A stretch of 64,000 nt of DNA from Mytilus edulis (Eukaryota), in assembly GCF_963676685.1 (NCBI RefSeq), contig NC_092351.1, positions 20,460,001 to 20,524,000 of the forward strand. The letters run 5' to 3'. This document shows positions 196-54,632 of the stretch, in pieces. The notes under the pieces were generated by a model, which did not search any database, was not told the DNA's origin, and worked only from the letters and a program-made list of their open reading frames with translations. The position numbers and the translations under genes are program-made. The stretch's first letter is position 1. Each line of letters begins with the position of its first letter.

Positions 196-2526
196 CTTCC
201 ATTTTACAATCACAAGTTTGAATGGTCTGTAATATTTTTTGTAGTTCTTTAACAAAAGCTGAAGCATCTGTTCCATCAGAGAAGTCTGGCTCTGTGACTA
301 TCTCCATCAGACCTGTTCCTACAAACAAACATATACTGTGGATTCATTTATTTTCGTGGGTATCATTTTTTTATGGATTAAGGGAAATTAACATGTTTGT
401 GGATATTTAATTTTGTGGTTTTGCTGCAGTCTGCATGCAAGCTTTAAGAAAATTTATTATTCGTTGAACATCTAATTTCAAGGTTCATCTGTACCAACTA
501 ATTTCTCAATAATTGGTATAAAACGAATAGTATTGAATCCACAATACTTACTGGAAAAAAGTGATTTAATAAAATTCACACATGAATGTACCCATCTGCC
601 CATATATATATATTTAACAATTCACATACTGCAAGCTAGCTTGAGCTAGAGAACAAAACCAGAGGTGAAAATGCTACAAGAATATATAATTTGTATCTCT
701 TCTTTCAAGGGGAAAAATGACAAACAACAGATTAAGACATTTAAAATTCAAGTAAGAAAGAAAAATAGAATTTTTAACCCAACAAGAAAATTATCTTTTT
801 ATCTACATATTTTTAAAGTAGATATATGCATGCTCCAATTTTACAGATCTACCAAAAAAGTAACTTTGAAAATGTAAAGACATTTTCAATACAGTGTAAC
901 CTGCCTAATCTGACACCTGAGTATTACCCTGCTTTGACTGACACATTAACATGGTTCCAAAATATGTCTATCTTTGCAGAAATGACCTCAGTATTCTGAC
1001 ACCCTGCTTAATTTGACATTTCTTCTGGTCCCCAGTGTGTCGGTTAACACAGGTTACATTGTACTATGTAATGAGGCTGTGTTTCAAAAAGATTACTTAC
1101 CACATCTGTTTAAATCAATTAAACTAATCCTGTCTTTTTCATCATGGAGACTTTTCCCGCTGTCCTGCTCTAGCTGTATCTGTGTAATATTTGCTGTTTT
1201 TGTTTCAAAGCTATTTTTATCACTGATGCAATAATCAACATGGCCTTTAACAGCTAAGGGTTGTCTTTGTTGAGTAATCTGATAACCTGCCTGGAAATGA
1301 AATAACCAAAATTTATTGGAAAATTTCAAACAGAGTCCTGACAGAGAGAATATTTAAAAAAAAAAATTAACTACATTTTGTTGCTGAAGTGAACATCATC
1401 AGTGTAAACAATAATTTTAAAATTAAACTTTTTTTAATTTAATAATAAATCATATACTAAAGTTTCATAATTTCCTGAGTAGAAACTTTTTCTTGAAACT
1501 CAACCCATCCAAATATGAGTGAACAAACTTAAGGCCAAAAAAAGCATGGAGGGCAGTATGTTCAACTTTCTTATTTTAAATAATTCTATACTTACAGGTA
1601 AATCTGCATAGAAATAATGTTTCCGATCAAACTTTGATACTTTGTTGACAGTACATCTCAAGGCCAGTGCTGTCAATACACCAGCTTCTACACAACCTTT
1701 GTTTAGTACCTATAAAATATATAGAAAGATTTATGTTCATTCAATGTCATGGACATCAATTTTGTTGAATGATATAAAATAAGATTTCCATGGATAGATT
1801 CATACATATTTCATTTTAAAGTTACTAGTGAAACTTTGAGCTATCCCTCCCTAATGATACCCCCTTCGTAAGTGGATAATTTTAATAGTGTAAAAATATG
1901 CAAGTGTTTGGGTAAATAGGAAGTTGCTGATTGATGAATCTGAAAAGGCATCACACAGTTTACAATGTAGCTGACTTATATAAACCCTGAAACCAAATTT
2001 CAAGAAATCCTTGTAATATAGTTCTTGAGAAAAATGTGATAAAATTAAAAAAATTTCAACTTGAATGTCACATGAAAAAATATGTAAGTGTTCAGTAAAC
2101 AGGAATTAAGTTGTTGAGTGATGAATCTGAAAATGCATCACATATTATCATGATTAAAGCTGACTCATAAAAACCCTAAAAAAAATTTCAGAAATCCTTG
2201 TAATGTAGTTCCTAAGTGGAGGGACTTAAAATATTCATGGGATGGTTGATGGAAAAGGAAATGAAGACAACAACCCAACAACATAATAATATACTAAAAT
2301 CTAAATAAAGGAATGATACAGGTCATGCATGTAGTTCACAGAAAAATCATACTGGATTCCTTTATTAAAACTTACTGGTAGGGTACCAGGAAAAGCAGCA
2401 TCAAACAGTGACACCTGTGTATTGGTTGGACCACCAAATTTGTTTTCTGCTCCTGAGAAGAGTTTACTCTCTGTATTTATCTGGGCATGGATTTCAAGTC
2501 CAACAACACTCTTCCATGGCTTAGAC
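196..2526 (-). CDS. GATB: Glutamyl-tRNA(Gln) amidotransferase subunit B, mitochondrial; partial (internal coding exons; gene continues beyond the left edge)
   Basis: Minus-strand exons 2526-2376 (151 nt; [24 protein letters not shown]...PGTLP), 1709-1596 (114 nt; [10 protein letters not shown]...[12 protein letters not shown]), 1290-1101 (190 nt; [11 protein letters not shown]...[13 protein letters not shown]...IDLNRC) and 318-196 (123 nt; [16 protein letters not shown]...CKME). All have GT-AG boundaries and consistent phase. Motifs [31 protein letters not shown] and EIVTEPD are GatB signatures. Confidence 0.96.
336..544. mobile_element. Tc1/mariner-type MITE (TA-flanked) in a GATB intron
   Basis: TA|CTGTGGATTCA ... 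TGAATCCACAA|TA terminal inverted repeats. A related diverged copy lies at ~51130-51288. Confidence 0.65.
892..1061. mobile_element. Tc1/mariner-type MITE
   Basis: TA|CAGTGTAACCTG ... CAGGTTACATTG|TA inverted termini with a TA target duplication. Confidence 0.7.
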
Positions 2527-3533
2527 CTACAATATTTTAAATACTGTTTGGATGCGAAAAACATCTAATGGGCCTTACATCATGTACATCCACCAGATAT
2601 ATAGATGTTGGGTCTCTCTAGCTAATATTGACAAAAAATGCAAGAAAAAGAATTAAGCAAGAAGAAGAATAATCACGTTTAGAAACAAGAAAACAATTTT
2701 AGTGTCAAGAAATCCAACAATTACGTCATATCTTGAATTTAAATAGATTGAAGAAAAAAGGTGTATAATTATTTTCTTTAATAAATAATGTTACATGCAG
2801 TTATAACATGAATTAAGTGATTTTTCATTTTTTTCATTATACTGATAGATAAAGAAATTAAACATTTAAAAAAAACAACTAAAGGATTGTATAGTTTTTG
2901 AAATCTTTGTTTCTAGACCCCACAACATGTATGTGAGAGATCCAATTTTGATAAAAAAATAAAAAAAAATAAAGGCATTTAAACTTCCAAGGACTTCAAA
3001 GATCACTGTATGTTTTAGCCCCTTTTGACTTAACTAAAAGATCGCATGATAAACAAGCATTCTGTGTGTATTGGCTATTGCATAACAATACATGTACATA
3101 GTCCCTTACCAGTCAAAAAATCATTGTACTGGAACAAAATTCCAACTTGATCTATAACTTGTTATTGTGTAAACTATACAGAAAAATATCAAATCAATAT
3201 CTTCAAGCATTACGGAAAGTGTTGAATATTTAAGTGAATTTTCTAGGTCCAAGGACCATAACTCTGCAGAAAATCAATATACTCATGATACTGAACAAAA
3301 TTCGAACTCGATCTGTTACTGCAGGTATTGATAAAATTATATACCAATTTTCTAATCAATATCTTCAAGCATGATGGAAAAAAGGGGGCAAAAATGATTA
3401 TTTCAGTGGATTTTATAAGTCATAGGACCATAATATGAGGCAGGCATCACCTGTAAATGGGGAAGAAGTCTGTTTGAATAATTTTTTTGTAACTTAAATA
3501 TTTGAACAAAAAAGGAACGGAAATACCGTAACG

Positions 3534-6293: not shown

Positions 6294-7540
6294 AACAAGA
6301 GGCTGTCACAACGACAGCAAACCGGATTTATTAACATTTATTTGTGTCCTGGCAATATCACAAGAACCATTACTGATAAATGGTGAAAGTGAAAATCGTC
6401 AATATCAAATTTGACCTCCATTTTGTCATCAGTATCAACATATTAAAATTTGAAAAGCTTAGATTGAATGGTTCATGAGTAAATGCAACAACGTGAATGG
6501 AAACGCCATTTTACGATCTTTCAAGAACCATAACTCCTGAACGGTAAAAGTCAAAATTGTCATTATTGAACTTGACCTCTATTTTGTCATCAGTAACAAC
6601 ATATTAAAATTTCAAAAGCTTTGGTTGAATGGTTCATGAGAAAATGCACGGACACGACGGGAAACACCATTTTTCAATCTTTCAAGAACCATTACTCCTG
6701 AACAGTAAAAGTCAAAATCATCATTATTGAACTTGACCTCCATTTTGTCATTAGTAACAGCATATTAAAATTTCAGAAGCTTTGGTAGAACAGTTCATGC
6801 ATTAAACGCATGGACACGACTGGAAACTCCATTTTTTCAATCTTTCAAGAACCTTAACTCCTGAACGGTAAAAGTCAAAATCGTCATTATTTAACTTGAC
6901 CTCCATTTTGTCATCAGTAACAGCATATTAAAATTTCAGAATCTTTGGTAGAACAGTTCATGCATAAATGCACGGACACGACTGGAAACTCCATTTTTCA
7001 ATCTTTTTTTAAGAACCATAACTCCTGAAGGGTAAAAGTCAAATTCGTCATTATTGAACTTGACCTCCATTCTGTCATTAGTAACAACATATTAAAATTT
7101 GGGAAGCTTTGGTAGAACAGTTCAAGCGTAAATACACGGACACGACTGGAAACTCCATTTTTCAATCTTTCAAGAACCATAACTCCTGAACGGTAAAAGT
7201 CAAATTCGTCATTATTGAACTTGACCTCCATTCTGTCATTAGTAACAACATATTAAAATTTGGGAAGCTTTGGTAGAACAGTTCATGCGTAAATGCACGG
7301 ACACGACTGGAAACTCCATTTTTCAATCTTTCAAGAACCATAACTCCTGAACGGTAAAAGTCAAAATTGCCATTATTGAACTTGACCTTCGTATAGTTGT
7401 CAGTAATAACATATTAAAATTTTAAAAGCTTTGGTTGAACGGTTCATGAGTTAATGCACGGACAACATTTGACTGCCGCCCGCCCGCCGTACATCCCCAA
7501 ATCAATAACCGACATTTTTGTCACAAAAATCCGGTTAAAA
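6294..7540. mobile_element. HINE-like element with ~7 internal ~161-bp tandem repeats
   Basis: Starts AACAAGAGGCTGTC. The unit AAAAGTCAAAAT..CATTATTGAACTTGACCTCC..CATAACTCCTGAACGGT recurs at ~161-bp spacing (about 6546, 6707, 6869, 7033, 7195, 7355). A GCCC microsatellite and terminal stem-loop lie near 7475-7537. Confidence 0.75.
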
Positions 7541-8350
7541 ATGAAATTGGTATTGCGTTCCTTCCTATTTTATACAAGACTGATAGATATATATTTTACT
7601 CAAAGTTTCATACAAACGAGACCAGAAAAAGGAAGTACATTGTAGATTTCTGGGCAGATGCGTGAATTCAAAACATGACATCCAAAAAATTGAACGATTG
7701 TGAGTTCATTAGTACAATGAAAATTTCGGGATTTTCTCCGATTTTTTTTTAATTTTTTTTTTTTATTGATTTTTCTACTGTTATTGGGGACTTCGTCCCC
7801 ATGATAATCCTGCAAAAATTCATCAGATCAGAACAAAAAATAATCTTAATTAGTTACATGTACATGAATCTTTTAAAATCGGTTTAATTTGATATTATTA
7901 CTTGCTTCTTAAATTTTCATATATACACCAAAGCTTTATTTTAAATGGTTTTAAGTATTTTAAAATTTCAATTTCTGTTTTGCATTGTAAAAGATTATTT
8001 CAAAATTTCATATAGGTACATCTGTCATCATGGTCATGTCTGTATTTTTCAAATTCAGTAAAATTTTATTCTTTAAAATTTGCTTTACATTTGATCATAG
8101 TTTTTAATTTTAATCATGTTTTTCTTTTTCAGCGACTGTACAGTTTTATTCCTTCAGTGTGCATTTAATTTGTAATGTTTATTATGTATACAATGTATTA
8201 ATGATTATTTTTTAATAAATACAAATTATAAATAATATTTTCCATTCTTTTCACTGACATAAATGACCTAATACACAAAATCCCAATATTACCGATAATT
8301 TCCATATATAAATCATGTTTCATTCCCAATATGATATTATAAAACCAGAT

Positions 8351-39800: not shown

Positions 39801-42800
39801 TAATGTAATACTTTGTTTACGTCAGATTCCACTAATTTTATTCATATCGCAATTTAGTAGTTAAAACGACTAAAAACTATTGAAATTAACGCGCAACGTC
39901 AAAATATTAAAAAAAATCTATTATTTTGGTAGTCATCAATTCAACAAACTGCAAAGTTTTGAAATTATCCTGAACAGCAAATATCTAGGTGAAATTCAAC
40001 ATTAAATTATCTAAATATTCTTCCGCAGATTAGAGTATTTTTTAAGTCTCAGATTTGTATGATTTATTTACATTGACAAAACATGTAATAACAAAAATGA
40101 AAATGTAAAAAGTTTACCGAAATCGAACAAGGAAAGACGAGTGACTCCAGCTGATCATACATTAAAGGAAAATAAATCCGATTTAACACACTAGATCTTG
40201 CATTTAATTCAATGTTAATTTGGAAAAAAAGATAACATGTTTGAACAAGATTATGGCTGTATCTTTTTTCAGTTCTATGTCCTTCTTCTTGAAGTCATTA
40301 CAATTGAATTGATCGTTCATGAGTATTTACGTCACATCTGACATCTATATTCCCCACTAATCAAACTAACACTCCCCATGTTATCGTCTCTTAAATTAAA
40401 CGAGTAACACGATGGGTGCGAGTAGTGAAGCAGAATCTGCTTACTCGTCCGAAGCACCGAGTTGAATCGCGATTTTCGAAGAGGGTTTATGTTGCTAGAA
40501 CGTTACTTTGTTGTGCTATCATGTGTTAAATTTGTTTAAAGTTATCGATTATTTTAAATAACATGTTTGAAAAACTGTCGTTTGAATCCAATGTTAAATT
40601 ATGTTATACACGTCAATATTTGTATTGTTCGTTAAATGATCTGAACATTGGTTTCCTCATTTTGTTTTATATATGTCGCCAGGACATAGAAGAACACTCC
40701 GTATGAAAACATCCAATGGCACCGGGATAGATTGGTTAAACCCTAGCGACATGTACTCAATACAACCTTTAGGCGACATTGAACACGATGCACGGTTTAC
40801 TGATTTCTTCAAATTTCATGTTAAGACATGCCACAGTGCATATGTTTACTTATCATCAACTTATGGGTTTGAATTTTATGATGTGTATGGCATGAATACC
40901 TGGTTTATGTATGAAATTATTTTTGGTGATGAAAATGGAACAACGATAACATGGAAAAAATTGTCGTCCGGCGGTGCTGGAAAACAGAGAAGTTTAAACA
41001 TTCCACAAATGAATTGTAATGAGTTTACAAGTTTCTGGATTCAGTGGAATGATATCGGCGAAATAAGAATTGGCGAAGGAGATCATGTTGGTGAAATGAC
41101 ATTGATTGGATGGCAAACACATTTGGACTCTGAGATGCCTTTTAGAATATATAACGTTGGAATCAAATCAGGGATCGATCTTGAAGTTGAATGGATAATT
41201 CATTTGACAGGTAATACTATCATGAACTTGGAGGAAAAAGAAAAGTTATAATTTCAATGACAAAATCAAAAGCTCAAACATAATTATAATCCTGGTACTT
41301 TTGATAACTATTTACACCACTGGGTCGATGCCACTGCTGGTGGACGTTTCGTCCCCGAGGGTATCACCAGCCCAGTAGTCAGCACTTCGGTGTTGACATG
41401 AATATCAATTATATGGTCATTTTTATAAATTTTCTGTTTACAAAACTTTGAATTTTTCGAAAAACTAAGGATTTTCTTACCCCAGGAGTAGATTACCTTA
41501 GCCGTATTTGGCACAACTTTTTGGAATTTTGGGTCCTCAATGCTCTTAAACTTTGTATTTATTTGGCTTTTTGAAATATTTTGATCTGAGCGTCACTGAT
41601 GAGTCTTATCTAGACGAAACGCGCGTCTGGCGTATAAAATTATAATCCTGGTACTTTTGATAACTATACCAAACGAATGGATAACTACTATCATATTCTT
41701 GACTTGTTACAGGCATTTAACTAGCTGAAAATGACGGATTGAACCTGGGTTTATAGCTAACTAAACCTCTCACTTGTATGATAGTCAATTATATTGACAC
41801 AATGTGGGAACAAAACTAACAGACATAAAAAGTATAGATGAAAAAAATGAGGGTACAGATGTTAACATTGTATTAATATCTTAATCATTTTAAAAACAAA
41901 CAAATATATAAACAAACATTTACCATGACACAATAACAAAAAGACGGAGGTATAAGTAGAAAGCCACGTCATATGTAACAAAGAAACAAAAAAAGGCATA
42001 TAGACACAGGATTTAAGTAAAAACGAAAGATTAGAATTTACAAATATTCATAGAATGTTGACGGGAAATATAGAGCCACGAAGCTATTCAATGACAGGGT
42101 TTATACATGTGATGTACTTGTATTATCAGTCCTATGTTATGACATACGCCATCTAGTCAAAAGTAAGAAGTTTATATCCCCTATATTAAACATGTTTGAT
42201 ACTGTTTCAAATTAATAAGGAACAAATAAAAGACAGTTTGAGCCCTTTTCTGCTATATCCTATAGCTATACATAAGGGGTAATATAAGTAAAGGAAATCA
42301 CACAATACATTAAGAAATACAATACATTAAGAAATACAATACATTAAGAAAATTAATTCATAATTGTTCTCTCGACTTAACGAATGTCTCCACATGCAGT
42401 TCATAGGATAGTAATTTAATGACTTTTTGAAGAGCTCCATATTTTAAAATTAAAAGTAGAACATTCCGATACTTCATATTTAGGATACTGACATCATATG
42501 TCAGTAAGTTACATATATCATTTGTCATTTGTTCTTTACCTTATTTTCAAGGTCTGTCTGTTTGACATGTTAATCTGAACCATTGTCTTCGTTTTTATGG
42601 TTTATTGGTCAACGTTATATTTTCCAGTTCTTAGATACCGGATGTTTATTTTTCGGATCATTTGAATTTACCTCATTTTCATGTTTCGTTTGTCCAGTTA
42701 TCTAGAGGGTTGAAAAACGAATATTTGTACGATTTTAATCTGATAACATAAAATGAGATACTGCAATCTAAACGCCTTTTAAGCCCCTTTGTTCTGCTCT

Positions 42801-48800: not shown

Positions 48801-51625
48801 GATTGGTGATCTTATTTAAAGCAGTATGACAAGATGAAAGTAGTATATAGTTTACGATAATTGACAATTCGCAGAAATCTTTTGACTGTATTTTCTTAGA
48901 CCCTGTGAGGGTAATTTTAATGATTGAATTGTTTTAAAAAAAAATGATAGGAGAATATTCAAAACAATGTAAGCACTGTACAAGATTTTGTCTTTTTAAT
49001 GACAATTAAAAAAACATCACATTAGAAAAAAGAAACAAAAAAACATTCCTTTTATTTATAGTTTATTTGAGCATTATTGATGAGTCAATTGTAGACGAAA
49101 AACACGTCTGGCGTCCTTAAAGAGGGCGAAATATACCAGAGGAACAGTCAAACTCATAAAAATAAACTGATAACGCAATGGTAAAAAATTAAAAAGACAA
49201 ATAATAGTACACAAGACACAACATAGAAAACACGAACCCCACCACACACTTGGGGTGATCCCAGATGCTCTGGAAGGGTGAGCTGATCCTACTCTACATG
49301 TGGCACCCATCGTGTTGCTTATATTATTACAAATCCGGTATACAGTCTAAGTCGGTAGGTCACATTCGTGAAAAGGGACGGGTATTGGAGCTACGACATT
49401 AGGAACATATCCGATATCATCTGTTAAACATCCATCAAAAGGATCTGTGCAGAGTAAGAGTGTGAATTCAAACGTGTTCCTTTACAAGAACATAATTTAT
49501 CAGAGTCTCAACAAAGTAAAATAGATTTCAACACTAATGCAACCTTGTAAGAACAAATATATATTTTTTAAAATACGCAATGTTTACAAAGAGGCAAAAA
49601 TTTCCAAATTAATAGTTATTAAATTTCAGTCTGCCCGCTACCACCAAGGAAACTGAATACCGATTATATTAATCCTGATTATGATGCTAAATATCGCCAT
49701 GGAGCCGCCTATCATTATAAATGTATGGCAGGATATTCAATGACCGGTAATGGTACGATCACATGTTTAAAAAACGGTCAATGGACAGAGCCTTCTTTCA
49801 CTTGTACAGGTAATTTTAGCATCGTTAAAGGAATAAACACACGGGCATTGTCTTAGGCATGTACAGCTAAGTGAGAACATGTATAGTTACTATATGATAT
49901 ATCAAAGGAAGAACTATTACATATTTTAAAATATTTGTCTGGTCGAAGTTCTTGTAAATATATGCGACACTGAATATGTGATCTTTATGAACCTCAACTA
50001 TTTCATGGCTAAACTATCCAAGACTAACACTATTACAAAGCATGGTTGCGTATACAAGTAGCGTACAACATTGGTTGTAATTGAATACAAGTGTGTAAAA
50101 TTGTGAATGGAAGTGGGGTATGTGTCAAAGAGACAACAACCAAACCAAAGAGCAGAAAAAAGTCAAAGGCCACTAATGGGTCTCCAATACAGCGTGAAAT
50201 TCCAGCACCCTGTATTAAATGGAGAATATTTAAATTACCCCGATACAATATAACAGATGATGATACCAAATGGACTTCTAGTTAAACACATAGCCGCTAA
50301 AAACACCCATATAGATATCATTTATGAGGAGGGCATATTAACAACTTTATTATTTTAATGTCCAGGCTATAAATTTTGAAATTATTATTAAGGAACTAAG
50401 GGTTCAACTCCCTCAGGCAAAGTTTGCTTTAGATAAATTTCGCTATTTATTTGAGGTATTTTTGATATATAGCTCTTCAACGGTGTCGGTACTTATACAT
50501 TGTCGGATTTCAAATGTTTGGCTTTGAGCGTTCCTGATGAAGGTAAATCCAGAAAGGCGCTTCGGAAGCAAGAAATTATTAAACACGTTTTTCTCAATAT
50601 TTTACATCACTGGGTCGATACCTCTGCTGGTGGACTAGAAGTCCCCGAGGGTATCTTCAGCTCAGTAGTCAGTACTTCGGTACTGACATGATTTAACAAA
50701 CTTTACTTAAATTGTCCGTTGATAAACTTTGAAATTATTAAGAGACTAAGATTTCAACTCCCTCATGCAAAGTTGGCTTTAGATGAATTTGGCTATTTAT
50801 TTTAGGTATTTTTGACATATAGCTCTTCAACGGTTTCGGTAATTATTAAGAAACTAAGGTTTCAACTCCCTCATGCAAAGTTGGCTTAAGATGAATTTGG
50901 CTATTTATTTTAAGTATTGACATATAGCTCTTCAACGGTTTCGGTACTTATACATCTTCGGATTTCAAATGTTTGGCTTTGAGCGTTCCTGTAGAAGGTA
51001 AATCCAGAAAAGCGCTTCGGATGCAAGAAACTATTTAACATGTTTTTCTCAATACTTCTCCTTCCTATGCTATGATTATTGGGCATCATGTTATTGTATC
51101 TTACAAAATCAATTCTTTGTAATTATATACTGTAGATTCATGAATATTCATTGGATACCAATTTTCGTGGATTTCGTGGGAACAGTGGAAATACAAGTTT
51201 CGTTAAAGGAAAGTATGCAGACTTTGCACCACGAATTTAAATATCAATCCACGAAATTTGGTACCCACAAAAATAAATGAATATACAATAAACATGACTA
51301 ACGTGCAACATATCTTACATGCTTAACGTACTTTCTTTAAGATGACTGTAAATGTCCATGTAACACGCCTGATTTGACTGAGGAAGATATTCAACAAATG
51401 AAGGATAAAATACGAAGAGAGAACTTAATTGACAAAAAGAGCGTTTCGAAATATAAGAGAAAGATAACAAGTGCCCCCGACAATAGATTCTCAGCAAAAG
51501 CAATTGGATACGTTGGAGTGGCTTGCTTGACAACGACCGGATTGGTTGTAGTCCTCATTGATGCTGTGACCCTTGTGAATACTCTGAACACTGTGTTTCA
51601 GAACATCAAAGGATTCTTTTTTTGA
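33868..51625 (+). CDS. Predicted type I membrane protein: signal peptide, 2x IgGFc-binding-protein N-terminal-like domain, 2x farnesoic acid O-methyltransferase-like (Methyltransf_FA) domain, 3x Sushi/CCP, C-terminal TM; ~1553 aa
   Basis: Exons 33868-33982, 34369-35561, 35869-35965, 37318-38546, 39715-39799, 40683-41210, 44567-45070, 46882-46974, 47930-48109, 48495-48668, 49630-49809 and 51342-51625 total 4662 nt, phase-consistent and GT-AG. Signal peptide MISVVVILLLQCVSG. IgGFc-like motifs DNGGREF, PVNVLGNEY, DLTGTMIKTDKAVAIFCG, EQFPPINTFG and DMSGTVIHS. FAMeT-like motifs F.VKTC..YEIIFG..CNEFTSFWIQW..IG.G and FSVRAC..YEI..FWISW..FG.G. Three C-..C-..C-..GxW..C CCP exons. Tail CKCPC...RKITSAPDNRFSAKAIGYVG followed by a hydrophobic helix. 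Confidence 0.82.
41282..41667 (+). mobile_element. Non-LTR retrozyme monomer (family A; 356-nt unit plus 30-nt terminal redundancy)
   Basis: Exact 30-nt direct repeat AATTATAATCCTGGTACTTTTGATAACTAT at 41282-41311 and 41638-41667, enclosing an intact type I hammerhead. Inserted into another interspersed repeat. Confidence 0.85.
41591..41632 (+). ncRNA. Type I hammerhead ribozyme (intact core)
   Basis: Stem I CGUCA/UGGCG; core CUGAUGA (41596-41602); stem II GUCU-uaucu-AGAC; GAAA (41616-41619); minimal palindromic stem III ACGCGCGU; predicted cleavage after GUC at C41627. Confidence 0.88.
42795..44530. repeat. 39-bp minisatellite array (~44 units)
   Basis: Unit CCACTTGTCTACCTTAGATTTATCAGTTCCTCGGATCGA, with recurring variants (..TTCGTCTGTTTCTCGGAGGTG; ..TTTATCAGTTTCTCGGTTCTG). 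Confidence 0.93.
45164..46224. mobile_element. HINE-like element with ~5.5 internal ~162-bp tandem repeats
   Basis: 5' stem-loop plus (ATTCCGTC/A)n microsatellite. CGCCTTCAGATAT-like anchor at about 45287, 45448, 45610, 45771, 45934 and 46093. Ends GACACATCTAGTT. An inverted partial copy is at ~59320-59645. Confidence 0.78.
49130..49430 (-). mobile_element. 3' tail fragment of an RT retroelement (same family as 53566-53950)
   Basis: Reverse complement matches 53625-53950 (GGATATGTTCCT..., AGCAACACGATGGGTGCCACATGT..., CCTCTGGTAT..TTCG.CCCTCTTT). Confidence 0.7.
50365..51053 (+). mobile_element. Tandem retrozyme array (family B; ~350-nt unit, two hammerhead copies)
   Basis: AACTAAG..TTCAACTCCCTCA.GCAAAG recurs at about 50395, 50744 and 50851. 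Hammerhead-like GCGUUC-CUGAUGA-AGGUAAAUCCA-GAAA-(G/A)GCGCU-UC-GGA.GC at 50528-50569, and a core-mutated copy (CUGUAGA) at 50983-51024. Confidence 0.75.
50528..50569 (+). ncRNA. Minimal type I hammerhead ribozyme-like motif (family B)
   Basis: CUGAUGA at 50534-50540, short GG/CC stem II, GAAA at 50552-50555, near-palindromic stem III, UUC cleavage triplet, imperfect stem I GCGUUC/GGAAGC. Confidence 0.6.
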
Positions 51626-53319: not shown

Positions 53320-53565
53320 AAAGATGTTGTCATCATCAAAGATACAAGACGCATTATTGTGTACGCCATACGTGTGTTTTGTCTACAACAGACGACTCAC
53401 CAGTAATGCTCAAATAAAACTCAAATAAAAGACCAAATAAGGTAAAAAATTGAAGAGTATTAAGGATCCCAAATTCCGAAATGTTTTATCAAATACTTTG
53501 AAGTAATCTATTCCTGGGGCAGACAATTCTACTTACTTCAAACAATTCAAAGTTCTGTGAACAGT
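53320..53565 (-). mobile_element. Degenerate family A retrozyme fragment
   Basis: Reverse complement reads GAGCATTACTGGTGAGTCGTCTGTTGTAGACAAAACACACGTATGGCGTAC plus upstream homology to 41440-41640. The core is mutated. Another degenerate plus-strand copy is at ~49060-49115. Confidence 0.65.
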
Positions 53566-53950
53566 TTTTACGGACGCCATCACGAGTTGGTTGACCGTTA
53601 TGGAATAACCGTTTCACAAATGCTATCGGATATGTTCCTTACGTCGTAACTACAATCCCCTTCCCTTTCATAAATGTGACCTACCGAATTAGACTATTTA
53701 CCGGATTTGTTATCTCAAAAGCAACACGACGGGTGCCACATGTGGAGCAGGATCTGCTAACGTTTCCGGAGCACCTGAGATCACCCCTAGTTTTTTAGTG
53801 GGGTTCGTGTTGTTTATTCTTTAGTTTTCTATGTTGTGTCAAGTGTACTATTGTTTGTCTGTTTCCTTTTCATTTTTAGCCATGGCGTTGTCAGTTTATT
53901 TTCGATTTTTGAATTTGACTGTCCCTCTGGTATCTTTCGTCCCTCTTTTT
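53566..53950 (+). mobile_element. 5'-truncated retroelement: C-terminus of an RT-associated ORF plus structured 3' UTR
   Basis: 53566-53649 reads FYGRHHELVDRYGITVSQMLSDMFLTS*, recognised as a C-terminal motif of abundant bivalve RT (Penelope-like) ORFs. The UTR recurs as fragments at ~27720-27980, 40400-40500, 47490-47590, 49130-49430, 52190-52400 and 59200-59320. Confidence 0.62.
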
Positions 53951-53954
53951 GAAT

Positions 53955-54632
53955 GATCATAGTTCCTTGATTATGGACGATTAGTCCTCGAGAATATCTT
54001 TAGATAAGCACTGAGTTCTTCAGTTCTGACATGATTTTGTAACAATTTGTTCTGAAAATCTCTGTTGATAAATCAATAAATGATTAAGAAACACAATTTC
54101 CAACTGCCTTAGCAAAATTTACTTTAGTGAATATGGCCTTTTTATATCAACTTTGGTCATAAAGTTCTTCATGTGATTATTTCTGATACAAACTTGGCTT
54201 TAAAAAGTTCGTGATATCAGTTAATCCACAAAAGCGTTTTAAACGCACGAAATCAATATAGATTCATTCTCATTTACTCAGTAGTCAGTACTTCGTTACA
54301 AACATGATACTCAACAAAATGTTCTTTGTTGATAACTTTAGAAATTATTGAGAAATTTGAGTGACTCTAACCCTAAGACAAATTTGACCTTGATGAATTT
54401 GACGATTTGAGGTTTCGAGGCGTGCAGTAAAACTATTTTTATGTACTTGGCTTTCAAATGTTTTGGTTTAAGCGTTCCTTGTGAATGTTAATCAAGAAAT
54501 GCTCGTCGGACGCACTAAATCAATAACGTATCATTTTCATATAATAGTACTCGATCGATACCACTACTGATGGACTACTAGTATATGTCTCCGAGGGTAT
54601 TATCATCATAAAACTCAGTGGTCAGTACGGTA
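53955..54632 (+). mobile_element. Old, degenerate family B retrozyme array (~2 units)
   Basis: Homology to 50365-51053: CTCAGTAGTCAGTACTTCG (54277), AGCGTTCCTTGTGAATG..GAAATGCTCGTCGGACGC (54471), TCGATACCACTACTGATGGAC..CCGAGGGTAT (54555). Confidence 0.6.

Follow-up and report, generated by a model that had tools for sequence, protein, structure and literature searches.

Metazoan non-LTR retrozymes are head-to-tail repeats of 170-400 bp without LTR, PBS or PPT, in which each monomer carries a type I hammerhead ribozyme. They are highly expressed, with reads running continuously across the ribozyme site, and their RNA is published as mainly circular and as ligated by RtcB in vitro; in Mytilus, about 5,000 hammerheads in 350-390-bp repeats from two ribozyme families have been described, which matches what is seen here (Cervera & de la Pena 2020, PMC7229834). 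That study names no second conserved domain, and two questions have stayed open since then: which autonomous element copies retrozymes, and how its RT recognises a circular RNA that has no poly(A) tail and no free 3' end. On the other hand, the Naiad clade of Penelope-like elements is characterised by an ORF with an N-terminal GIY-YIG followed by RT, a partial-tandem pLTR structure, 5' truncation, the absence of a canonical hammerhead and a high copy number in bivalves (Craig et al. 2021, PMC8557442). In the text of that study, supplements aside, neither a conserved 5'-UTR RNA structure nor hammerhead retrozymes derived from Naiads are described, and Naiads are treated as unconnected to hammerheads.

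Three further systems offer a comparison. First, in helper/parasite retrotransposon pairs (stringent LINE/SINE 3' stem-loops and the R2 3' UTR), a structured RNA segment is the only part shared between autonomous and non-autonomous elements and lies next to the point where reverse transcription starts. Those segments form the 3' end of a linear template and are copied first, whereas the domain analyzed here lies 3' of the start point, abuts the start codon of the putative helper, and would be copied last on a circular or tandem template. Second, group II intron DIVa, the high-affinity RT/maturase binding site, is a stem-loop containing the start-codon region of the RT ORF, so that RT binding can both recruit the enzyme and mask translation; this is only an analogy, as there is no sequence or structural homology and the RT clade differs. 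Third, Penelope-like RTs are the sister group of TERT (PMC8557442). TERT is positioned on an internal template by adjacent structured RNA, but only a short template is copied repeatedly in telomerase, whereas here the whole RNA is copied, and the comparison is again purely an analogy.

In this study, we analyzed a window of 64,000 nucleotides from Mytilus edulis (GCF_963676685.1, NC_092351.1, positions 20,460,001 to 20,524,000), in which two retrozyme families (A and B) share a block of about 80 nt (41319-41400 in family A). The features are collected in the table below, with positions counted from the first letter of the window.

Features of the retrozyme and Naiad-related sequences in the window
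Positions	Strand	Feature	Supporting evidence
41282..41318	+	Upstream copy of the 3' tail (41282-41311) plus a 7-nt linker (41312-41318); 41311|41312 corresponds to where DNA copies end	3' ends at phase 40-47 in about 42 of 44 family A insertions or arrays
41319..41376	+	Family A, long hairpin arm: P1, 41319-41325 paired with 41370-41376; P2, 41327-41332 paired with 41360-41365; invariant core, 41334-41344 (CUGCUGGUGGA) opposite 41353-41360 (CCCCGAGG); P3 tip, 41345-41351	Minimum-energy fold; covariation counts; per-lineage helix table
41378..41397	+	Family A, hairpin 2: 8 bp closed by a cUUCGg tetraloop; length 2 to 8 bp between lineages	Minimum-energy fold; covariation counts; per-lineage helix table
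41398..41401	+	AUGA, following hairpin 2 in 11 of the 13 copies tabulated (copy L151 keeps AUG, as AUGG; one decayed family D copy, L099, has UUGA); the ORF start codon in Naiad elements, opening only 2-17 non-conserved codons in the retrozymes	Naiad protein matches begin at residue 2 of the N1 ORF
41590..41633	+	Type I hammerhead of family A; predicted cut between 41627 and 41628	Rfam Hammerhead_1, 33.1 bits against a gathering score of 34, E = 1.7e-6
41628..41667	+	40-nt 3' tail ending ...GAUAACUAU; the end of the insertion	
50609..50691	+	Family B copy of the whole domain: P1-P3, hairpin 2 and AUGA (block, 50609-50690)	Model R1, 101.7 bits; same fold as family A
53566..53950	+	3' end of a 5'-truncated Naiad N3 copy, stopping about 8 nt before the position where P1 follows in full-length N3 elements	93% identity to locus L093, positions 14-398
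53960..54605	+	Decayed family-B-like array with three domain remnants (53960-54034, 54274-54307 and 54556-54605, the last a degenerate fragment)	Model R1, 9.8, 13.2 and 17.8 bits

The observation made in the preliminary description, namely that families A and B share a block whose substitutions preserve pairing, was confirmed, and every substitution listed there is real. Hairpin 2 is GUCAGCAC-UUCG-GUGUUGAC in family A and GUCAGUAC-UUCG-GUACUGAC in family B, P2 is GAUGCC/GGUAUC in A and GAUACC/GGUAUC in B, P1 is CUGGGU/GCCCAG in A and CUGGGU/GCUCAG in B, and the GGAC-loop-GUCC stem is kept while the loop changes. In addition, the first and last loop bases of the GGAC hairpin form a further covarying pair (G-C, U-A or A-U). 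The A and B copies folded separately to the same minimum-energy structure (-37 to -40 kcal/mol), with z-scores of -4.5 and -4.1 against dinucleotide shuffles. A block no more conserved than the rest of the monomer had been named in advance as a possible refutation, but the block proved to be the best-conserved part: between-family identity was 0.75-0.97 inside it and about 0.2-0.7 elsewhere, the hammerhead scoring only 0.3-0.75. A whole-genome DNA search with the block returned nothing, its words being too common, and a covariance-model search of the genome returned only identical family A copies; however, a pattern search revealed about 7,000 exact copies of the 32-nt core pattern, against 0 for the reversed control. 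The repeats have periods of 350-364 bp and form arrays of up to at least 16 units. The Rfam hammerhead score of family A is just under the gathering score, and the family B and C hammerhead cores (CUGAUGA or CUGAAGA ... GAAA) were read by eye.

The same domain was found directly 5' of the ORF start codon in three families (N1, N2 and N3) of Naiad-type Penelope-like elements in this genome, assigned to this type from their endonuclease-first organization. Model R1 detected it directly before the ATG at 78 bits in N3, 62-66 bits in N2 and 26 bits in N1, although these families share only 50-56% protein identity. The N1 ORF of 1,012 residues contains GIY-YIG (PF01541) at residues 138-228, with RT motifs such as YIDD downstream in the translation, and its homologues carry PF00078. 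At locus L091, a 194-nt repeat at 7497-7690 matched 3170-3363 at 99% identity, as expected for a pLTR made by a 5'-truncated upstream tandem copy, and Rfam showed no hammerhead in L091 or in loci L092-L096. However, only these three Naiad families carry the domain, which was absent from the 29 other GIY-YIG loci examined, even with filters off and the broader model R2. Within the window, neither model matched at 53720-53814, a stretch that is Naiad N3 3' UTR, and Rfam gave no twister hit on 53560-53960. The domain also occurs in hammerhead-less 201- and 279-bp tandem elements ("mini-Naiads"), which keep only about 75 nt of the 3' UTR, the domain and 48-130 nt of the ORF, still form arrays, and define a natural minimal unit of about 200 nt. 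Outside the domain, retrozymes and Naiad 5' or 3' regions share no significant nucleotide similarity apart from one 28-nt hit, which is a retrozyme tail inserted in the N1 3' UTR. In other collections, a metagenome scan gave one true hit among 80 loci, the rest being chance matches, and a viral scan gave none.

To examine whether the fold is under selection, we compared natural copies only, in a 14-sequence alignment covering nine lineages. P1, P2, the P3 tip and hairpin 2 covary: 96.2% of cells paired against 88.5% in shuffles (0/500), 12 pairs changed on both sides against 6.7 in shuffles (0/500), and slid controls paired only 37-48%. It should be considered that the lineages come from essentially one genome, that the retrozyme lineages are related to one another, and that the D/E copies in the alignment were selected for carrying a mutation at one paired position. 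The 11+8-nt core is unchanged in all lineages examined, so its pairing cannot be tested by covariation and it could equally be a DNA-level motif. Each Naiad copy folded on its own to the same architecture, an extended irregular hairpin (P1-P2-core-P3) followed by a second hairpin. Alternative pairings received no such support: GCUGGUG/CACCAGC and ACCA/UGGU are compatible in 93-96% of cells but show no covariation and fail in N1. A closing helix between the 3' tail and positions +6 to +11 after the AUG was predicted in 5 of 7 folds, but its duplex energies were not better than shuffles (p from 0.05 to 0.9), and we do not claim it.

Insertions of retrozymes and Naiads alike end 3-10 nt upstream of the domain, while their 5' ends vary. 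In family A, the phase given in the table is counted after the hammerhead cut and corresponds to 1-8 nt before P1, and the 5' ends fall at any phase. The same end position was seen in family C, in family D/E, in the family B array in the window, in a contig from another assembly (taken to be another species), in N1 from its pLTR repeat, and in N3. Target-site duplications were visible in only 2 of about 44 insertions. RNA-seq depth was 1,000-3,000 on the monomer and about 0 in the flanks, mostly from one strand, probably the sense strand. Hundreds of reads ran across the hammerhead site and the junction, joining 41637 back to 41282, a pattern that fits either circles or multimers, and no pile of molecule ends reached a fifth of the local depth.

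The interpretation offered in the preliminary description was partly supported. A selected, structured RNA element is supported by the conservation profile, by the covariation, and by G.U pairs that make the fold specific to the + strand, and among the functions proposed there (RT recruitment, circularisation or stability), RT recruitment fits best. However, the proposed multi-branch fold is wrong for the retrozymes, as only Naiad family N1 has a three-way junction, made by an inserted hairpin. The element is also not specific to retrozymes, being the 5'-UTR element of a retrotransposon clade. As for its description as non-ribozyme, the evidence is in silico only: Rfam searches of the whole window at gathering scores and of the block at E <= 10 gave only the hammerhead. 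Among the papers searched, none contained the core sequence in a relevant context.

Our preferred, though still tentative, explanation is that the block is a structured cis-acting RNA domain of Naiad-type (GIY-YIG-first) Penelope-like retrotransposons, which in the autonomous elements fills the roughly 80 nt between the junction where the 3' end meets the 5' body and the ORF start codon. The hammerhead retrozymes of the mussel type (lineages A-E) and the mini-elements would be non-autonomous relatives that have kept it. In this view, the Naiad RT, or its RNP, would bind the invariant internal-loop core held in place by P1, P2 and P3, and would start target-primed cDNA synthesis in the short single-stranded linker 3-10 nt upstream. 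On a circular or head-to-tail RNA the enzyme would run away from the domain and could go round more than once, which would produce arrays with one fixed 3' end and variable 5' ends. The homology, the fold, the covariation, the position of the domain and the fixed 3' ends come directly from our analysis, whereas binding by the Naiad RT, a requirement for mobilisation and internal initiation of reverse transcription are inferred; the fixed 3' end could instead arise from RNA 3'-end formation at that site. If this reading is correct, it provides a concrete candidate helper (N1-N3, with N3 the closest) and a concrete candidate RNA signal for the two questions raised above, and it ties Naiads to hammerhead retrozymes. 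A further, more doubtful possibility is that the domain is a docking and priming platform on which a TERT-related RT is positioned by adjacent structured RNA to initiate internally on a circular or tandem template, which would be the missing step in how retrozyme circRNAs become DNA, and that the same site also gates translation of the RT's own start codon.

Among the alternatives, all of which appear unlikely, a translation-start element survives best: an IRES-like or start-codon-presenting structure for the Naiad ORF on RNAs lacking a cap after ribozyme processing or circularisation, or an autoregulatory site where the RT masks its own AUG, which retrozymes would keep to reach ribosomes or the nascent RT. 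Hairpin 2 ends exactly at the AUG in all Naiad families and in all but one decayed retrozyme copy tabulated, despite its variable length; the AUG stays conserved in non-coding retrozymes, which points to a link with translation; the hammerhead cut lies 47 nt upstream of P1, so processed RNA would be uncapped; and the mini-elements keep the AUG and the first codons. However, the retrozymes encode no conserved peptide, so translation alone cannot explain their strong conservation, nor does it account for the fixed 3' ends. This reading is compatible with the preferred one, because one RT-binding site could serve both roles.

Slightly less likely is that conservation acts mainly on DNA, the core being a promoter, initiator or transcription-factor site that each monomer and each Naiad copy would need in order to be transcribed. 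The core is unchanged in all nine lineages, it lies where Penelope-like elements are reported to have promoter or TSS activity, in the pLTR/5'-UTR region (PMC8557442), and retrozyme RNA is very abundant (PMC7229834). Nevertheless, the compensatory changes show a base-pairing constraint, the G.U pairs, including one that never changes, make the fold specific to the transcribed strand, and no read-start pile marks a TSS at the domain. A tRNA-derived SINE or pol III type 2 promoter was also not supported, since ARAGORN found nothing tRNA-like and a B-box-like GGGTCGATGCC precedes, rather than follows, an A-box-like stretch (by eye).

An RNA-processing site, in which a new self-cleaving ribozyme or a protein-guided cut at the 5' edge would create the ...CUAU 3' end from which reverse transcription would then start, much as HDV-like ribozymes mark the 5' ends of R2-type elements, is also improbable. 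The domain does sit exactly at the boundary between the 3' end and the 5' body, it has an invariant core flanked by covarying helices, and two conserved ACCA motifs are complementary to the invariant UGGU, which allows a pseudoknot or a conformational switch. However, Rfam gave no match to known self-cleaving classes (HDV-like, hatchet, twister, twister-sister, pistol, hairpin) on the block at E <= 10, all helices supported by covariation are nested, so there is no double pseudoknot, and RNA reads cross the site.

A circularisation or stability module, a rigid unit that helps RtcB-type ligation or protects the circRNA, is less likely still: the fold is very stable and retrozyme RNA is published as mainly circular, but the domain lies 47 nt from the ligation site and is equally conserved in autonomous Naiads and in the mini-elements, which have no known circular stage, and a purely structural role would not require an unchanged 19-nt core. 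Finally, although all retrozyme families are homologous along the whole monomer, a functionless, slowly decaying remnant of a common ancestor is contradicted by the identity inside the block (against about 0.5 elsewhere), its retention across divergent Naiad families, the 12 pairs changed on both sides, and the expressed RNA pool, which showed 3 variable sites in the 82-nt domain against about 25 in the next 189 nt.

In this part of the study, we first examined whether the 78-nt block was present as the preliminary description had claimed, and found both intact copies, in retrozyme families A and B, and the degenerate copy, so the observation held. The two intact copies folded separately to one predicted structure, composed of P1 (ACUGGGU paired with GCCCAGU), P2 (GAUGCC paired with GGUAUC), an irregular core region, P3 (a GGAC(N) stem-loop) and hairpin 2 (8 bp closed by cUUCGg), with folding z-scores of -4.5 and -4.1. 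The reverse strand folded less well in family A (z -2.85) and about as well in family B (z -3.88). The interpretation offered in that description, a selected multi-branch RNA element serving for example RT recruitment, circularisation or stability, was only partly supported. The structure is two adjacent stem-loops rather than a multi-branch junction. A search of Rfam revealed only the type I hammerhead (33.1 bits) and nothing on the block, and ARAGORN also found nothing. Coordinates of all features are collected in the table.

Coordinates of the domain copies, related elements and neighboring features
Feature	Location	Remarks
Block, family A copy	window 41320-41397	intact
Block, family B copy	window 50610-50687	intact
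Block, degenerate copy	near window 54556-54605	
Type I hammerhead	window 41590-41633	Rfam
Octamer GCTGGTGG in the invariant core	window 41336-41343	
Two ACCA motifs and the UGGU of the core	window 41315-41318, 41366-41369 and 41338-41341	columns 4-7, 55-58 and 26-29 of the alignment
Flanking sequence with RNA depth 0	window 41200-41237	
Main RNA joint	window 41637 back to 41282	
3' end of a Naiad N3 copy	window 53566-53950	5'-truncated copy; 93% identity to L093:14-398
Naiad N3 3' end together with the decayed retrozyme-B-like array	window 53566-54630	
Structured stretch of the Naiad N3 3' UTR	window 53700-53830	-39.8 kcal/mol, z = -2.4
Mini-Naiad, 201-bp period (L241)	G000:C1:68128990-68129480	N3-type domain
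Mini-Naiad, 279-bp period (L240)	G000:C2:95561270-95561870	N2-type domain
Insertions of the family A tail only	L015:2586-2615; L056:1134-1162 (-); L091 3' UTR, sense positions 749-777	29-30 nt; phase 12/13 to 40/41
Family A array with target-site duplication	L060:1425-2562	3.2 units
Retrozyme-B-like monomer from a different assembly (L151)	L151:780-1190	contig JYMV01024826.1 of the metagenome collection
Internal tandem repeats of the N1 Naiad 3' UTR	L091:3500-4010	about 247-274 bp

In this 1.37-Gb genome, the 32-nt core pattern occurred 6,971 times, against 0 for the reversed control, mostly in arrays with a period of 350-364 bp, which matches the published description of Mytilus retrozymes (PMC7229834). 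We identified five retrozyme lineages (A to E), which are homologous along the whole monomer. Between-family identity was 0.75-0.97 in the block and roughly 0.2-0.7 elsewhere. Thus, the block is better conserved than the hammerhead.

Second, we found that the domain is also present in Naiad Penelope-like elements. A covariance model of the block hit one locus among 30 GIY-YIG loci, and extension of that locus to 10 kb (L091, representing Naiad family N1) revealed a 1,012-aa ORF with GIY-YIG at residues 138-228 and RT motifs downstream, an endonuclease-first order which is the Naiad architecture (PMC8557442). A 194-nt pLTR repeat was present at both ends of the element, and the domain filled exactly the space between the end of the upstream pLTR and the ATG. 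A protein search with the N terminus found two further families, at 56% and 50% identity, whose upstream regions carry the domain at 62-66 bits (N2) and 78 bits (N3), again ending at CAUGA, where AUG is the start codon. Each copy folded alone to the same architecture, although N1 has an extra 10-bp hairpin that creates a three-way junction. None of these elements had a hammerhead according to Rfam. Apart from one 28-nt match, which is a retrozyme tail inserted in the N1 3' UTR, the domain was the only significant nucleotide similarity between retrozymes and Naiads, and the only one found between the N2-type and N3 5' regions compared. The N1 3' UTR also contains its own internal tandem repeats, and a stretch of the N3 3' UTR in the window is structured. 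A twister-like fold in Naiad tails was not confirmed by Rfam, which gave no twister hit on this stretch.

Covariation was analyzed on 14 natural sequences from eight lineages, with N1 treated separately. In this alignment 96.2% of cells paired, against 88.5% in shuffles (0/500), and 12 pairs changed on both sides, against 6.7 in shuffles (0/500), whereas slid controls paired only 37-48% of cells, with 1-4 pairs changing on both sides. It should be considered that the lineages come from one genome, and that the D/E copies were selected by a pattern that required a mutation at one paired position. The variants observed among lineages were all paired: ACUGGGU/GCCCAGU, ACUGGGU/GCUCAGU, ACCGGAC/GUCCGGU and ACCAAGU/ACUUGGU in P1, and GAUGCC/GGUAUC, GAUACC/GGUAUC, GAUGUC/GACAUC, GGAAUC/GAUUCU and GAUGUC/GGCAUC in P2. 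The core, CUGCUGGUGGA opposite CCCCGAGG, was unchanged in every lineage examined, and the flanking U of UCCCCGAGG and the A-U pair it forms were unchanged in the 14 aligned sequences, so that pairing of the core is beyond the reach of covariation. G.U pairs, one of which is invariant, make the fold specific to the + strand. In addition, two conserved ACCA motifs are both complementary to the invariant UGGU of the core; they paired in 93-96% of cells, and C-to-U changes kept a wobble pair. This could be a pseudoknot or a conformational switch, although covariation provides no test of it. The invariant core also contains GCTGGTGG, the same octamer as the E. coli Chi site, which is almost certainly a coincidence in an animal genome.

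To examine the position of the domain relative to insertion ends, we mapped about 44 family A insertions or arrays onto a natural monomer. Their 3' ends fell at phase 40-47 after the hammerhead cut (...GAUAACUAU), which is 1-8 nt before P1, whereas their 5' ends fell at any phase, with a cluster at phase 8-14, just downstream of the hammerhead cut. Insertions of the family A tail only were observed at three loci. The same 3' end position relative to P1 appeared in every other context that could be checked: family C, family D/E, the family B array in the window (which ends about 10 nt before where P1 would be), a retrozyme-B-like monomer from a different assembly that is taken to be another species (L151), Naiad N1 from the boundary of its pLTR repeat, and Naiad N3 from the 5'-truncated copy in the window and from L241, a tandem mini-element. 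The L151 monomer sits in an intron of a gene resembling an ionotropic glutamate receptor and has the same layout of 3' end followed by domain, but its minimal hammerhead was not detected by Rfam. In the window, the N3 3' end directly abuts a decayed retrozyme-B-like array at the usual junction between 3' end and domain, which could be a chimeric insertion made by template switching or two nested insertions. One 3.2-unit family A array (locus L060) is flanked by a 31-nt target-site duplication, so multimers can be inserted in a single event. Another insertion locus, L003, has a 14-nt duplication, whereas about 40 other insertions showed none above chance.

A natural deletion series was provided by two hammerhead-less tandem families ("mini-Naiads", L240 and L241), which keep only the last 75 nt or so of a Naiad 3' UTR, the domain and the first 48-130 nt of the ORF. 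Therefore, a junction-spanning segment of about 200 nt is enough to form arrays, and a ribozyme is not required. These families look like a retrozyme class without a ribozyme.

We then aligned four RNA runs to the window copy. Depth was 1,000-3,000 on the monomer and 0 in the flanking sequence. In the three libraries that showed strand bias, one read orientation dominated 5- to 8-fold, which under the usual stranded-library convention means that the RNA is the + (sense) strand. The main joint, a step of 356 nt, was supported by 52 to 670 reads per run (about 300-670 in the three deeper ones), and no pile of molecule ends appeared at the hammerhead site or at the edge of the domain. This fits circular or multimeric RNA, and argues against a dominant linear species that begins or ends at the domain. 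Variable sites in the RNA pool numbered at least 3 within the 82-nt domain and at least about 25 in the next 189 nt. One of the three was the G.U/A-U switch in hairpin 2, and another was an unpaired base.

The facts shown here fit a cis-element shared by a helper (Naiad) and its non-autonomous relatives and placed right next to the point where DNA copies end. On the other hand, two points are only inferred, and tentatively: that the Naiad RT recognizes the invariant core, which the covarying helices would present, and that it primes in the linker upstream. Because the RNA pool is continuous across that site, we favor internal initiation on circles or multimers, although formation of an RNA 3' end at that position is not excluded. 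Hairpin 2 always abuts the AUG, and the AUG is kept in all retrozyme copies tabulated except one decayed family D copy. This suggests a link with translation, which could coexist with RT binding in the way the group II intron DIVa site does. Promoter, ribozyme and stability readings, in this order, are less likely rivals.

Retrozymes have been proposed to depend on Penelope-like elements (PMC7229834), vertebrate retrozymes resemble the pLTRs of Neptune and Poseidon elements (bioRxiv 10.64898/2026.07.22.740005), and Naiads are described as lacking hammerheads (PMC8557442). We found no description of this domain, its core sequence did not occur in a relevant context in the papers searched, and Rfam has no family for it; what appears to be new is the domain itself and its presence in both Naiads and hammerhead retrozymes.
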